Assembly: GCF_006345805.1 (NCBI RefSeq)
Contig: NC_043020.1
Span: 10,354,001 to 10,418,000, forward strand
DNA length: 64,000 nt
Source: Octopus sinensis
Lineage: Eukaryota
Direction: 5' to 3'
The notes beneath the pieces were generated by a model. That model was not told where the DNA came from, did no database searches, and saw only the letters and a program-made list of their open reading frames with translations. Both the position numbers and the translations under genes were made by a program. Positions within the stretch are counted from its first letter, which is position 1, and the number at the start of each line of letters is the position of its first letter. Shown here piece after piece: positions 27,411-54,139 of this stretch.

Positions 27411-27796
27411 TTAATGATTATTTTTGTGTAAGTTATTGATAATGAAGTAGCTGGAGAACATATTGGGGCTGATGAATTTTACCATGTTCATCTGCAGAAA
27501 GATTGTGTCATTAGTGTTAAATTTGTATTTAAATAATGACTGTATCACTCCATGTTCTACTATGTTTAAGGAACTTAAACTTCTCTCCATGAACACAGAA
27601 CTTCTCCCGTCATCCTTTCTCTTTAACATCAAGGTTACATTTGATTCAGGAGAACCTTTTGGAATGTACATATGTACTGCAAAGTTTATTTCATACATCC
27701 CACTTTGAGGTATAAGAATGTAAGTTTCATTAAGCAGTTTAATGTTGCCTTCATCCTGACTCTCATCTTTCTTCCACTCTAAGTCAGTATTTCCAT
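27411..27796 (-). CDS. TNF ligand A, exon 4 (TNF homology domain, DGNTDLEW...IPQSGMYEINF...SYFIINNLHKNNH*)
   Basis: TTTTTCAG acceptor, phase 1; L.W, L.IP..G.Y and terminal aromatic strand pattern of TNF domains; 459+70+48+386=963 nt, 320 aa. Confidence 0.85.
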
Positions 27797-29010
27797 CTGA
27801 AAAAGAAATAATTATATTATTCTACATGTTCCTACCTGTCTCTTTTCATGTGTTGTACTTACATCATCAAGAGAAGTTATTACTCAAATGGCTCTTTATA
27901 TGTATATACATACACATATATATATATATATATATATATATACATATATATATATCATCATCATTATCATCATCGTTTAACGTCTGCTTTCCATGCTAGC
28001 ATCGGCTGGACGATTTGACTGAGGTCTGGCGAACCAGACTCCAATCTGATCTGGCAGAGTTTCTTCAGCTGGATGCCCTTCCTAACACCAACCACTCCGA
28101 GAGTGTAGTGGGTGCTTTTATGTGCCACCGGCATGAAGGCCAGTTAGGTGGTACTGGCAATGGCCACGCTCAAATGGTGCTTTTTATGTGCCACCTGCAC
28201 AGGAGCCAGTCCAGCGGCACTGGCAACGACCTCGCTCGAATGTTTTTTACACGTACCACCAGCACAAGTGGTAGTAAGGTGATGCAGGTAACGATATATA
28301 TATATATATATATATATATATATATAATATATATATAATATATTTATATATATAAAAATATATCAGTATTTGTGTGTGTGTGTGTGTGTGTTTGTCCCCC
28401 ACCGCCATTGCTTGACGACTGATGCTGGTGTGTTTATGTCCCCATAACCTAGCAGTTTGGCAAATGATACCGATAGAATAAGTCCTGGGGTCGATTTGTT
28501 CGACTAAAGGCAGTGCTGCAACATGGCCACAGTCAAATGACTGAAACAAGTAAAAGAATAAAAAAAATAATAATATCCTACATGGCACGTAAAAAGCACC
28601 CACTACACTCACGGAGTGGTTGGCGTTAGGAAGGGCATCCAGCTGTAGACACACTGCCAGATCAGACTGGAGTCTGGTGCAGCCTCCTGGCTTCCCAGAC
28701 CCCGGTCAAACCGTCCAACTCATGCTAGCACGGAAAACGGACGCTAAACGATGATGATGATGATGTAGGATATGTCAGCCTTCACAATAATTGCATTGAA
28801 GCCACTTCGATAACAGGTACACAAGATGGGATGCACTTCCCTAGTACCTCACATGATGATGACTACAAATGACCCCAGCCTTCATTTCATTTCAGAATGA
28901 GTTCAGTTCCCTGTAAGGCTGCCCTACTATCTGACAATAAATAAGGCACAGGGACAGGCATTTAACAAAACTGTAAATAATAAACATTTAATCAACATGT
29001 ATATATGAAT

Positions 29011-29340
29011 AACAATTGCAGCGTGGAAGGTGTTTGTAAGCCATTTAAGAAACACACAAAAGCCGTTCGATTCACTTCAACATTTAAGTTTAATTTGTCA
29101 AAATATTTTTGTCGCTTTAAGACCGCGACCTGTTCACTGACAAAAATCCGTGCTGCAGTGAACAGGTCGCGGTCTTAAAGCGACGAAAATATTTTGACAA
29201 ATTAAACTTAAATGTTGAAGTGAATCGAACGGCTTTTGTGTGTTTCTTAAATGGCTTACAAACACCTTCCATGCTGCAATTGTTTTCGTTTCAGCACACG
29301 ATCTCAGATCAGGTCACTTGCTATGCAAGTACATCTCCAA
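29011..29340. mobile_element. Palindromic insertion (129-bp arms, 16-nt loop, ~55-bp tail) with a 13-bp flanking direct repeat
   Basis: Arms 29011-29139 and 29156-29284; TATATATGAATAA at 29000-29012 and 29341-29353. Confidence 0.8.
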
Positions 29341-30824
29341 TATATATGAATAAGTTGTATCATTTTAATTCATCTTTTATTTTCTAAAACTATAAAGCAC
29401 ATCATATCTATCAAATGTATTATAAGGAGGGAAATATGCAATGCCTTATTAGATGGCAGGATATCAAATGAATTTTTGAAACTCCTTGCTTATGTTAATT
29501 AAATATACTAACATAATATTTTCAAATGTGCTGACTTATACCGTGGAATTTCCATGGGCCTACTCTTACTCTCTCTTTTACTCATTTACTTGTTTCAGTC
29601 ATTTGACTGTGGCCATGCTAGAGCACCACCTTTAGTCGAGCAAATCGACCCCAGGACTTATTCTTTGGAAGCCTAGTACTTATTCTATCGGTCCCCTTTT
29701 GCCGAACCGCTAAGTTTCTTGATGTTACATTTGTTCTTTTGTATTTTGTTTATATGTTTTGATGGTTGCTGTCTGCTCTGTAATAGTTAAACCATAACCC
29801 AAGCAATAAACCCCACCCATCTCTAGTATTATATATTTCTTTACTACCCACAAGGGGCTAAACATAGAGGGGACACACAAGGACAGACAAAGGGATTAAG
29901 TCGATTATATCGACCCCAGTGCGTAACTGGTACTTTATTTATCGACCCCGAAAGGATGAAAGGCAAAGTCAACCTCGGCGGAATTTGAACTCGGAACGTA
30001 ACGACAGATGAAAAACGGCTGCGCATTTCGCCCAGCGTGCTAACGTTTCTGCCAACTCGCCGCCCTACATTTCTGCCAGCTCGCCGCCCTAGTATTATAG
30101 GACATATATCTCTGGTATTATAAGACATATGTAATTGTCGTAGCAATAACAGCAGCAGCAGCACAACAACAGCAGTGGCAGTAATAGTAGTAGTAGTTAG
30201 CCTACATGTCTCCAATTTCAATTATAGTTGGTCCATGTCTCTCAGTGTAGCAGTTTACTCATGCTTGTCATAATACTTGAGTCTATAATGTTGATATACA
30301 TCGACCAAGTGTAAAAGTTTCCCCCAGTTCTATAACAGCAGGAGTTAACGCAAATACATAACAGTAGTCATAAACACAAGTCTGTTCTCTCTTTCTCTCT
30401 TTTACTTGTTTCACTCATTTGAATGCGGCCATGCTGGAGCACCACCTTTATTCAAGCAAGTTGACCCCAGGACTTATTCTTTGGAAGCCAGTACTTATTC
30501 TATCGGTCTCTCTTATACCGAACTGCTAAGTTACAGGGACATAAACACACCACCATCGGTTGTCAAGTGATGTTGGGGGGACAAACACAGACGCACAAAC
30601 ATATACACACACATACATATATATATATACATATATACAATGGGTTCTTTCAGTTTCTGTCTACCAAACCGACTCACAAGGCTTTGGTCGGCCCGAGGCT
30701 ATAGTAGAAGACACTTGCCCAAGGTGCCACACAGTGGGAATGAACCCGGAACCATGTGGTTGGTGAGCAAGCTACTTACCACACAGCCATTCCTGCGCCT
30801 ATATAATGAAAGTATTTCAATTAA

Positions 30825-31215
30825 TCTCTCTAAATATAAAGCCTAAGTTGTCCGTGTATGGCAGGTTTGGTAGCCTTCAACTAACACTATCTCCTCTGAG
30901 ACCCTGCAGCGCAAGTTGACCTAAATTGAGAGTATGATAGAAGAAGGCTTGCTCCTCCTTCTGTAGAAGAAAATATTCAATCGGACCATGTTAACACCAA
31001 AAATTCTTTACATCAAAAAGGTCCTTTTTTTCTATGAAAATCACTATTTTTTACGATTGTTTGACTGCTGTGTCGCCATTTTTTGGTGTATTTCAACCAG
31101 AAAAATGTTCACTTAAAAAGAATAACAAGCTACATAATGCAAAATGTTTACTTTTCAAAAATTCCAATTCTAAAGGGTCGAAACAAATCCGAGCAACGCC
31201 AGGCGATACTGCTAG
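30825..31215 (+). mobile_element. Non-autonomous Helitron
   Basis: A|TC...CCGAGCAACGCCAGG...CTAG|T; the paralogous site in gene B (~47423) is empty and shows no target duplication. Confidence 0.85.
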
Positions 31216-52362: not shown

Positions 52363-52777
52363 ATTGTGGCGATCTTTCGTCTCTAGTAGACCTTTCCGTC
52401 GATTTCCGTAAATTTTTTTTTTTTTTACATATGGGCTTGCGGGAACTTTTGAAGTAATATACATACATATACACATACACCGAGTAAGAAATTTCAGTTA
52501 TCTCTTTCTTTCACACATACTAACAGAAGCACTTCACTTACACAACATACTGTCTGTCTCCCACACCCCATCAAACACACACAAACACACACATGTACAT
52601 CAATGCTTCCCGTGCACGGTAACTTCAAAAGAATTTCCCTCGTCATACAATCGCTTTCTCTTAGTCTCTTTCGCTCTCATTACTTCAAAAGTTCCCGCAA
52701 GCCCATATGTAAAAAAAAAAATTTTTTACGAAAATCGACGGAAAGGTCTACTAGAGACGAAAGATTGCCGAAATTGT
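52363..52777. repeat. Inverted repeat / MITE-like element with ~95-bp arms
   Basis: GTCTCTAGTAGACCTTTCCGTCG...GGGAACTTTTGAAGTAAT occurs reverse-complemented at 52679-52777. Confidence 0.75.
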
Positions 52778-53329
52778 TGTGTGCACGCCCACACACAAGC
52801 ACAAAAGTTCTCCAGACGTTTAGCTGTTATTTTTAGCATATCGAGTTTCGTGGTGGGGGCTTTTGCCGTTTCATTATAAATGAAACGGTATACGGAAATG
52901 GACAAAATAGTTGTTCATTTTCACTTTTAGACAGCGGGATGAGGTGTGCTAAAATTTGTTTACCCCCACCACCACCTCATTCTTAATCTCCATATTTTTC
53001 CATATCTACATGGAAAAATTTTTTCAATCTATTGAAAAAAAAAATTCCAAAAAGTTGAGAATTAAAAAAATGTTTTGAGTGTTGGGAATTAAAAATTTTG
53101 AAAACGTGGTCTTTTGTATATCCGGAATCTCCATCATGGAAAACATAGGGATCCGGTGAAAAAAAGAAATTGGAAACGCCAGTGCCGGGGTGGGGTGGGG
53201 TGGGGCGGGGTGGGGGAGACTGTGCTGCCAAAATGGTCGTTTTTGCGGTAAAAATTGAAACCATTATGATTATTATTTAAGACAGTTTGATTTGAGTCCA
53301 TGTAAATCGAAGTTTTGAAAGATTCTAGA

Positions 53330-53720
53330 AGAAAGAAGAAGAAGAAGAAGAGAAAAGAAGAAAGAAAGAAAGAAAGAAGAAAGAAAGAAAGAAGAAAGAA
53401 AGAAAGAAAGAAAGAAAGAAAGAAAGAAAGAAAGAAGAAAGAAAGAAAGAAAGAAAGAAAGAAAGAAAGAAAGAAAGAAAGAAAGAAAGAAGGAAAAGAA
53501 AAAAGAAAGAAAGAAGAAAAAGGAAAGAAAGAAAACGAAGAAAGAAAGAAAGAAAGAAAGAAGAAAGAAAAAGAAAAAAGAAAGAAAGAAAGAAAGAAGA
53601 AAGAAAGAAAGAAAGAAAGAAGAAGAAGAAGAAAGAAAGAAAGAAGAAGAAAGAAAGAAAGAAAGAAAGAAAGAAAGAAAGAAAGAAAGAAAGAAAGAAA
53701 GAAGAAGAAGAAGAAGAAGA
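53330..53720. repeat. (GAAA)n/(GAA)n microsatellite
   Basis: Direct reading; starts ~40 bp into TNF-B intron 1. Confidence 0.95.
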
Positions 53721-53759
53721 TAACTTTCATATATGAGATTACATGTAAATAATAGTTAC

Positions 53760-54139
53760 CTTATTTGCAATAAAAGCTATTGTTACACCAACTATAACAA
53801 TGCAAATATAACAACAATGCAGAGCGATCCAATATTTATATCGTTTACACCATTGTTCTATGCATAGACGTGCATTTTGAATACCGGCAGCTTCGTTGTT
53901 CGTTTCATTATCTTGTCTATTTTGAGGACCCTGCTGTATCCCATCAGCTTGATTAGTGGCAGGTGGCTATTTTCAGCGGTTTCTTCAGGTGACGGAAGCG
54001 ATGTTAAATTATTGGATGTTCCAGCGTCTTCAGTTCCTTCATCTTGATCGGGTTCTCGATGATACATGAGCGGTGTCTCTGTGATCGGTTCATTCTCGTT
54101 ACGATCAGTTCCGTTTACGTTACGATCAGTTCCATCCAT
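53760..54139 (-). pseudogene. TNF ligand B, exon 1, frameshifted near 53969
   Basis: The ATG54139 frame stops at 53858; the transmembrane segment (QWCKRYKYWIALHCCYICIVIVGVTIAFIANK|GTAAC) is in the -1 frame and aligns with A (QWCRKFKYAIL...ANHTQIK|GTAAT). An assembly error cannot be excluded. Confidence 0.65.

Follow-up and report, generated by a model that had tools for sequence, protein, structure and literature searches.

Two probable TNF-superfamily ligand genes in the 3' half of an octopod tandem array

Do two neighboring minus-strand genes of Octopus sinensis, both without a functional name, encode ligands of the tumor necrosis factor (TNF) superfamily (TNFSF), and how have they changed relative to their closest paralogs? 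The genes lie in a 64,000-nt stretch of DNA (GCA_006345805.1 CM016882.1:10354001-10418000, plus strand; hereafter the window) that has a G+C content of 30-45% and abounds in microsatellites and in debris of short and long interspersed elements (SINE/LINE). Gene A is RefSeq LOC115224005 and gene B is RefSeq LOC115224071. The original prediction, made from sequence alone, had described them as a hidden tandem pair of divergent TNF ligand genes. We conclude that A and B are very probably protein-coding type II genes of the TNF-ligand superfamily and that they form the 3' half of an octopod-specific four-gene array.

"Hidden" proved too strong a word because both genes have RefSeq models. The gene B product is 100% identical to XP_029650732.1 (LOC115224071, 224 aa), and the RefSeq DNA of that locus equals the window at 28,139/28,139 overlapping bases. 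The companion claim, that homology-based annotation would miss or fragment the pair, was borne out: Pfam is blank for both, RefSeq labels both proteins "uncharacterized", and the models in O. vulgaris are faulty. A literature search found no mention of the LOC identifiers of these genes in papers. Already known, then, are the RefSeq models, the UniProt labels that assign a TNF homology domain (THD) to O. bimaculoides relatives, and an octopus TNFSF clade described in a preprint (bioRxiv 10.1101/2024.07.27.603686). What is new is the contrast in divergence between A and B and their upstream paralogs, which comes from the comparison with O. vulgaris.

Family membership and fold

Word-indexed protein searches gave only 3, 1 and 6 relatives, and an exhaustive HMMER search was needed to reveal the family. 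Run over 1.84 billion representatives with a profile of two sequences (A1), this search returned 19 proteins. Every relative that was traced to its source comes from an octopod (O. sinensis, O. bimaculoides, O. vulgaris or Argonauta hians), and most full-length relatives have the same type II architecture together with the motifs HHAFFxLKTxGY, LxW, IPQDGxYxI and FISxN..SSYLSITSL. Ectodomain identity within the family is 36-62% among Octopus members and 18-33% to Argonauta members. A 1,277-nt Logan contig (SRR16213285) holds an uninterrupted 225-aa open reading frame (ORF) that is 87% identical to O. bimaculoides LOC106873363. Transcription, with the expected splicing, is thus evident for at least one member of the family.

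A second profile, A2, is a 12-member ectodomain alignment. Its invariant positions (L22, W24, G49, Y51, I53 and I136) are kept in both A and B, and its invariant motifs align with the L-D-W and D-G-I-Y of zebrafish TNF-alpha. That protein (7dov_A, deposited as lymphotoxin-alpha) ranks first when A1 is searched against the Protein Data Bank (PDB; E 0.017) and is matched at E 1.9e-5 by A2, with the alignment running across 'L-x-W ... I-I-P-x-D-G-I-Y'. The hidden Markov model search with PF00229 that the original prediction proposed as a check had a divided outcome: neither A nor B is matched directly, but 7 of the 12 members of A2 match individually (best E 1.1e-6), and no other Pfam family is hit more often or more strongly within the set. 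In addition, a PF00229 match is precomputed for two O. bimaculoides relatives, which UniRef calls 'THD domain-containing protein', and UniRef names three further relatives 'TNF family profile domain-containing protein'.

The fold evidence comes from a model of the gene A ectodomain and extends to gene B through its alignment to A, which has no large gaps and 41-42% identity. The exon-4 peptides of the two genes match far beyond chance (tblastn E ~1e-24, 41% identity). Predicted as a monomer by AlphaFold2 (AF2) with the A2 alignment, the gene A ectodomain is a beta-sandwich of 11 strands (mean predicted local confidence, pLDDT, 87.8; predicted TM-score, pTM, 0.83). A Foldseek search of the PDB with this model returned TNFSF ligands for all of the top 50 matches (E 1.9e-8 to 4e-7, TM-scores 0.66-0.86), among them RANKL, TL1A, TNF-alpha, LT-alpha, CD40L, FasL and APRIL; no C1q structure was among these 50. 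On this model the gene A ectodomain is predicted to adopt the THD fold, in line with the C-terminal beta-rich, TNF-like domain that had been proposed. The core and trimer-interface motifs can be recognized in the sequences as well: LxW in strand A'/B', GxYxI in strand C and a hydrophobic C-terminal strand H. Where TNF-alpha has YSQV, gene A has NFAV and gene B has GSMQ, and the C-terminal 'FGxxxL' corresponds to FIINNL and LTITNL, respectively, so the earlier claim that these two motifs are replaced stands; their placement relies on the profile-to-structure alignment and on general knowledge of TNF-alpha.

Could the domain instead be a generic C1q/TNF-like jelly roll of the kind found in C1q, cerebellin, BclA-like proteins or viral and phage fibers? 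PF18573 (BclA_C) is also touched by 2 of the 12 members (best E 2.5e-4). A single-sequence AF2 model of the gene A RefSeq protein, of low confidence (pLDDT 60), matched phage tail fibers and birnavirus VP2, with TRAIL, CD40L and zebrafish TNF also near the top; the alignment-based model has superseded it. However, the 50 best PDB matches of the confident model are all TNFSF, PF00229 outranks every other Pfam family among the members, and the layout of a type II transmembrane (TM) segment, stalk and C-terminal domain differs from the signal peptide, collagen-like stalk and C1q head of the C1q family; neither a signal peptide nor a Gly-X-Y (collagen) repeat is present in the A or B proteins. We therefore regard a generic jelly roll as a very remote prospect. 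Membership of A and B among the TNFSF ligands has three independent supports: transitivity through the PF00229-matching family, the family profile and the fold.

Gene models and shared architecture

The positions of the exons and other features of the two genes, and of two further paralogs, are collected in the table.

Table. Features of genes A and B and of the upstream paralogs. Positions are those of the window unless CM016882.1 is given; a slash marks an exon border.
Feature	Position	Strand	Remarks
Gene A (LOC115224005)	41960..27411 (CM016882.1 10,381,411-10,395,960)	-	
Gene A coding exon 1	41502..41960 (459 nt)	-	ATG at 41960; acidic cytoplasmic tail; donor AAG/gtaatg, phase 0
Gene A TM segment (predicted)	~41585-41520	-	hydrophobic, ~22 residues, after basic RKFKY: RKFKY-AILCIISIVFLLIVITLIMAVA
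Gene A exon 2	33734..33803 (70 nt)	-	proline-rich stalk KTQHVKPLPLHPATSSPPQPPSQ; next intron phase 1; agrees with RefSeq protein
Gene A exon 3	31321..31368 (48 nt)	-	HHAFLYLKTSGYTDP (xHHAFLYLKTSGYTDP); first beta-strand of the THD
Gene A exon 4	27411..27796 (386 nt, stop 27413-27411)	-	most of the THD: LEW, GMYEINFAV, SSYFIINNL
Gene B (LOC115224071)	54139..45862 (CM016882.1 10,399,862-10,408,139)	-	
Gene B coding exon 1a	54119..54139	-	MDGTDRN; donor AAC/gtaaac
Gene B coding exon 1b	53760..53966	-	remaining cytoplasmic tail and TM; donor AAG/gtaact, phase 0; weak acceptor at 53967
Gene B TM segment (predicted)	~53831-53766	-	hydrophobic, ~22 residues, after basic KRYKY: KRYKY-WIALHCCYICIVIVGVTIAFIA
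Gene B exon 2	48145..48172 (28 nt)	-	short stalk GQHDSQRPQ; next intron phase 1
Gene B exon 3	47497..47544 (48 nt)	-	QYASFDLKTSGYSEL (xQYASFDLKTSGYSEL)
Gene B exon 4	45862..46232 (371 nt, stop included)	-	THD: LQW, GRYEIDGSM, TSYLTITNL
Gene B hyperdivergent patch	45978..46085	-	28/108 nt differ from O. vulgaris, nearly all nonsynonymous
Paralog LOC115223891	CM016882.1 10,423,189-10,433,186	same as A/B	upstream of gene B, outside the window
Paralog LOC115224014	CM016882.1 10,450,424-10,457,935	same as A/B	upstream of gene B, outside the window

For gene A, the proposed 963-nt ORF of 320 aa was reproduced with canonical splice sites throughout (459 + 70 + 48 + 386 nt; three GT-AG introns in phases 0, 1 and 1). 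The RefSeq isoforms of 280 aa (X1) and 254 aa (X2) are shorter by internal deletions. The 320-aa model agrees with the X1 protein except for one internal deletion of 120 nt, and the 40 residues missing from X1 are present in the O. vulgaris model. The 320-aa form, canonical at every splice site, is the simpler reading of the gene.

Gene B has a different beginning. Its ATG at 54139 is out of frame with the TM-coding part of what had been taken as exon 1, and the frame stays open only if a further 152-nt intron (54118-53967) is removed, as it is in the RefSeq model; the acceptor of this intron, 'gaagaaaccgctgaaaatag', has no polypyrimidine tract. This splice model yields the 224-aa RefSeq protein exactly. 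With ATG and TM in different frames, gene B therefore takes a model of five coding exons. The four-exon plan with phases 0, 1 and 1 that had been ascribed to both genes thus holds for the last three introns and their phases, which match in A and B, but not for the number of coding exons. Exon 2 was located from the RefSeq protein; a tblastx comparison of the first introns of A and B, tried as another route to this exon, was dominated by SINE and microsatellite repeats that both introns contain.

The two genes otherwise share a good deal. A basic juxtamembrane motif, QWC(R/K)(K/R)(F/Y)KY, followed by the TM segment and a phase-0 donor, closes exon 1 in A and exon 1b in B. The hydrophobic stretch with basic residues on its N-terminal side agrees with the type II segment foreseen at the end of the first coding exon, as does a helix that AF2 predicted from the single sequence over residues 78-113 (pLDDT 86-96) of the gene A X1 protein, and both proteins are accordingly predicted to have type II topology. 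The 48-nt exon 3 with LKTSGY is seen in both genes, and the acceptors before exon 4 agree letter for letter over 'attatttctttttcag/AT G'; both had been pointed out before and both were confirmed. The stalks differ, with 24 residues, rich in proline, in A and 10 residues in B, and the ectodomain has no cysteine in A and one in B. There is no obvious furin site in either protein, so membrane-bound signaling and shedding by another protease would be equally possible.

Repeats occupy parts of the gene B introns. A long tandem repeat at window 48430-49128, in intron 1b/2, has ORFs on both strands made of units of about eight residues (TRQTSYLS, CAQIRSLS) and looks non-coding. The same large intron holds a 202-aa ORF at 50615-51223 (+) with no Pfam match, which we count as retroelement debris, and intron 3 contains a weak reverse-transcriptase (RVT_1) fragment at 46601-46951 (-). 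Beyond gene B, retroelement debris at 57194-57673 (+) includes an RVT_1 fragment (E 1e-21).

The tandem array and its divergence between sister species

The original prediction of a locally duplicated pair was right but understated. A and B make up half of a head-to-tail array on one strand, with at least four genes and a span of ~10.381-10.458 Mb (~77 kb), in which they are the 3'-most members. No further copies were found in the window or within 10 kb on either side of LOC115224014 or LOC115223891. O. vulgaris has been reported to possess eight Eiger-like ligands and four wengen-like receptors, with six of the ligands forming an octopus-only monophyletic clade at 100% support (bioRxiv 10.1101/2024.07.27.603686). 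The array belongs to this octopod-specific TNFSF expansion. Elsewhere in the clade, the O. bimaculoides model LOC106872472 (XP_052832125.1, 315 aa) contains two THD-like halves, of which the first breaks off after strand C. Either tandem genes have been fused in this model, or the THD is duplicated in frame, as in cases that the preprint discusses.

We compared the array with the orthologous region of O. vulgaris (OX597837.1:30.438-30.522 Mb), one assembly against another. The upstream paralogs are frozen in their THD exon: exon 4 of LOC115223891 and of LOC115224014 each differ at 0/390 nt (0/780 in total). Exons 1-3 of gene A are 99-100% identical, and introns 2 and 3 of gene B differ at 14/1,864 nt (~0.75%). 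Exon 4 of gene B (L005 5643-6013) is open and indel-free in both species, and it differs at 33/369 nt and 25/123 residues, an excess that is highly significant against its own introns (Fisher p = 1.6e-16) and against the paralog exons (p = 1.9e-17). These differences divide into 30.5 nonsynonymous and 2.5 synonymous, giving a Nei-Gojobori dN/dS of 3.2 for the exon as a whole; the ratio is 5.5 across codons 37-93 and 0.49 in the codons that flank them. Most of them fall in the hyperdivergent patch listed in the table, which by way of the gene A model and the A2 alignment spans the CD loop, strand D, the DE loop, strand E and the EF loop. Counted over the 57 codons of this CD-to-EF face, the nonsynonymous changes since the two species split number ~28. 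In solved TNF-receptor complexes, the CD-to-EF region is receptor-contact territory.

Several technical or mechanistic origins of the patch were considered. Compensating frameshifts were rejected, since the alignment is ungapped and mismatches amount to ~26% rather than ~70%. A systematic artefact of the O. vulgaris assembly in THD exons was rejected as a general explanation because exon 4 of each upstream paralog is unchanged. Gene conversion from a distant paralog is disfavored, since hardly any synonymous sites of the patch have changed (1.5/34.5) and none of the sampled paralogs is clearly nearer to its sequence; a close copy that was not sampled may nonetheless have served as donor. The divergence of gene B may reflect diversifying selection, old balanced alleles or conversion from such an unsampled copy.

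The last exon of gene A has fared differently. In the O. vulgaris assembly (L005 ~24537-24888), purine-rich and CA/TA-repeat sequence, with indels, stands in place of three internal blocks of exon 4 and leaves no frame open, while the ends and flanks of the exon are 100% conserved. The truncated O. vulgaris model of gene A follows from this disruption, which means either a pseudogene or a fault in the assembly. Gene B has no proper model of its own in the O. vulgaris annotation (OX597837.1:30438019-30493838); a chimeric model of 281 aa begins in the LOC115224014 ortholog and ends with gene B exon 2 and intron read-through.

Taken together, A and B appear to be evolutionarily unstable and the fastest-changing members of the array, next to frozen upstream paralogs. 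The pattern fits birth-and-death evolution with diversifying selection on the ligand surface. One could go further and view A and B as a subcluster of fast turnover, caught up in an arms race or a shift of specificity, through exon-targeted acceleration or ancient balanced alleles, with A lost in O. vulgaris. We hold this extension to be possible but doubtful; if true, it would make the locus comparable to venom and MHC-like systems.

Several observations weigh against reading A and B as intact ligand genes. Pfam scans of their last-exon peptides, of exon 1 and of the full proteins gave no match to PF00229 even at E <=10, and the weak matches that did appear (RIFIN, SHP and others) were low-complexity or TM in nature and were disregarded. 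No transcripts of gene A or gene B were found, each protein being located on one genomic contig only, and the 320-aa form of gene A is absent from the protein collection. The RefSeq isoforms of gene A use irregular borders: X1 drops window 41796-41677 with non-canonical AC..AG ends, and X2 in addition cuts exon 1 short by 78 nt (41502-41580) at TT, losing the TM segment. In gene B, the frame from ATG to TM is broken in both O. sinensis and O. vulgaris and leans on a mini-intron with a poor acceptor. Finally, gene B exon 4 shows a contrast between nonsynonymous and synonymous change that, taken alone, is only marginally significant (Fisher p 0.04-0.11).

Some of these features would suit one or both copies being decaying or non-functional duplicates, polymorphic pseudogenes included, that are rescued by ad hoc predicted introns. 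The missing transcript contigs, the isoform borders of gene A and its disrupted exon 4 in O. vulgaris all point that way, as do the stops that lie between the ATG and TM frames of gene B in both species; the exon-1 region of gene B (L006 48519-49144) is only 79.6% identical between them, with 15 gaps, in the same alignment in which the DNA just upstream is nearly identical. However, the THD, stalk and TM exons of A and B are open in O. sinensis, with GT-AG borders intact and phases conserved, and the family-invariant core residues are retained in both. Exon 4 of gene B has stayed open and free of indels in both species despite its 33 substitutions, and a neutral copy would be expected to diverge like the introns (~0.75%) rather than by 9%. 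The confident AF2 model of the gene A ectodomain argues in the same direction. We consider decay an improbable account of the pair and retain the reading of A and B as protein-coding ligand genes.

A cytokine role for A and B would follow from their family, and here another alternative enters: they may be genuine THD proteins that have been co-opted for a ligand role in development or the nervous system (compare EDA), or as secreted salivary or venom effectors, and are not immune cytokines. Venom, reproductive and other arms-race genes typically have exons that diverge more than their introns. Besides the 9% difference in gene B exon 4 between species, the two genes themselves show this order. 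Exon 4 of A and exon 4 of B have 64% identity, each of the three codon positions giving the same value (dN 0.43, dS 0.73), which is below the 82-84% identity of the intron 2 parts beside exon 3 (window 31369-32168 vs 47545-48119). Yet this intronic likeness may be a local gene-conversion tract just as well as a conserved intronic element. Moreover, both proteins keep the TM anchor and have no signal peptide, and characterized mollusc TNFs respond to immune challenge (cited in bioRxiv 10.1101/2024.07.27.603686). A role outside immunity seems to us unlikely.

A putative signaling system and its known relatives

How might such ligands work? Each protein is predicted to consist of a short acidic or polar cytoplasmic tail, the QWC+K/R..KY motif, one TM helix, a stalk and a C-terminal THD with a 10-strand jelly roll. 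By analogy with TNFSF ligands, Eiger and mollusc TNFs, three ectodomains would pack through conserved aromatic and aliphatic positions into a bell-shaped homotrimer, with contacts probably made by LxW, GxYxI and the C-terminal S-Y-[FL]-x-I-x-x-L strand. TNFR-type receptors with cysteine-rich domains would then bind in the clefts between protomers, mainly at the AA'', CD, DE and EF loops, and their clustering could recruit TRAF-type adaptors and engage TRAF, NF-kB, JNK or caspase pathways, as for Eiger and mollusc TNFs.

Cephalopod cytokine biology is almost uncharted. Identity as TNF ligands gives functional names to LOC115224005 and LOC115224071 and adds two members to an octopus TNFSF repertoire in which counts based on Pfam may miss them. 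It also flags faulty O. vulgaris models, namely the truncated gene A and the fusion of gene B exon 2 onto an upstream paralog. A compact array of four genes suits studies of expression and receptor pairing, and two frozen next to two fast-changing paralogs in sister species offer a small, testable case of a diversifying invertebrate cytokine surface.

Among known systems, C1q and BclA_C proteins have the superfold in common with A and B, but the octopus genes have neither collagen stalk nor signal peptide and their structural neighbors are TNFSF. With the vertebrate TNFSF ligands (TNF-alpha, LT-alpha, CD40L, FasL, RANKL, TL1A and APRIL) they share type II topology, a C-terminal THD lying mostly in the last exon, the jelly-roll fold (TM-scores 0.66-0.86), LxW, P-x-x-G-x-Y-x-I and a hydrophobic C-terminal strand. 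They differ from them in having only 12-16% identity to solved structures and in their replaced YSQV- and FGAF-type motifs (NFAV/GSMQ and FIIN/LTIT). Invertebrate TNFs such as Drosophila Eiger, the abalone TNF-alpha homologue, oyster CgTNF-1 and pearl oyster PmTNF are likewise protostome type II ligands with a single THD. Published descriptions have mollusc TNFs induced by pathogens and activating NF-kB; the octopus clade is lineage-specific and not orthologous to the TNFs of bivalves and gastropods (bioRxiv 10.1101/2024.07.27.603686). The closest relatives are the octopod TNFSF members, comprising O. bimaculoides LOC106873363, LOC106872472/3, LOC106878338 and LOC106880432, O. sinensis LOC115224014, LOC115223891 and LOC118761074, and the O. 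vulgaris clade. A and B share with them architecture, motifs and tandem clustering, at 36-54% ectodomain identity, but are among the most divergent, have no Pfam TNF match, and have changed between sister species in which the upstream paralogs are identical in exon 4.

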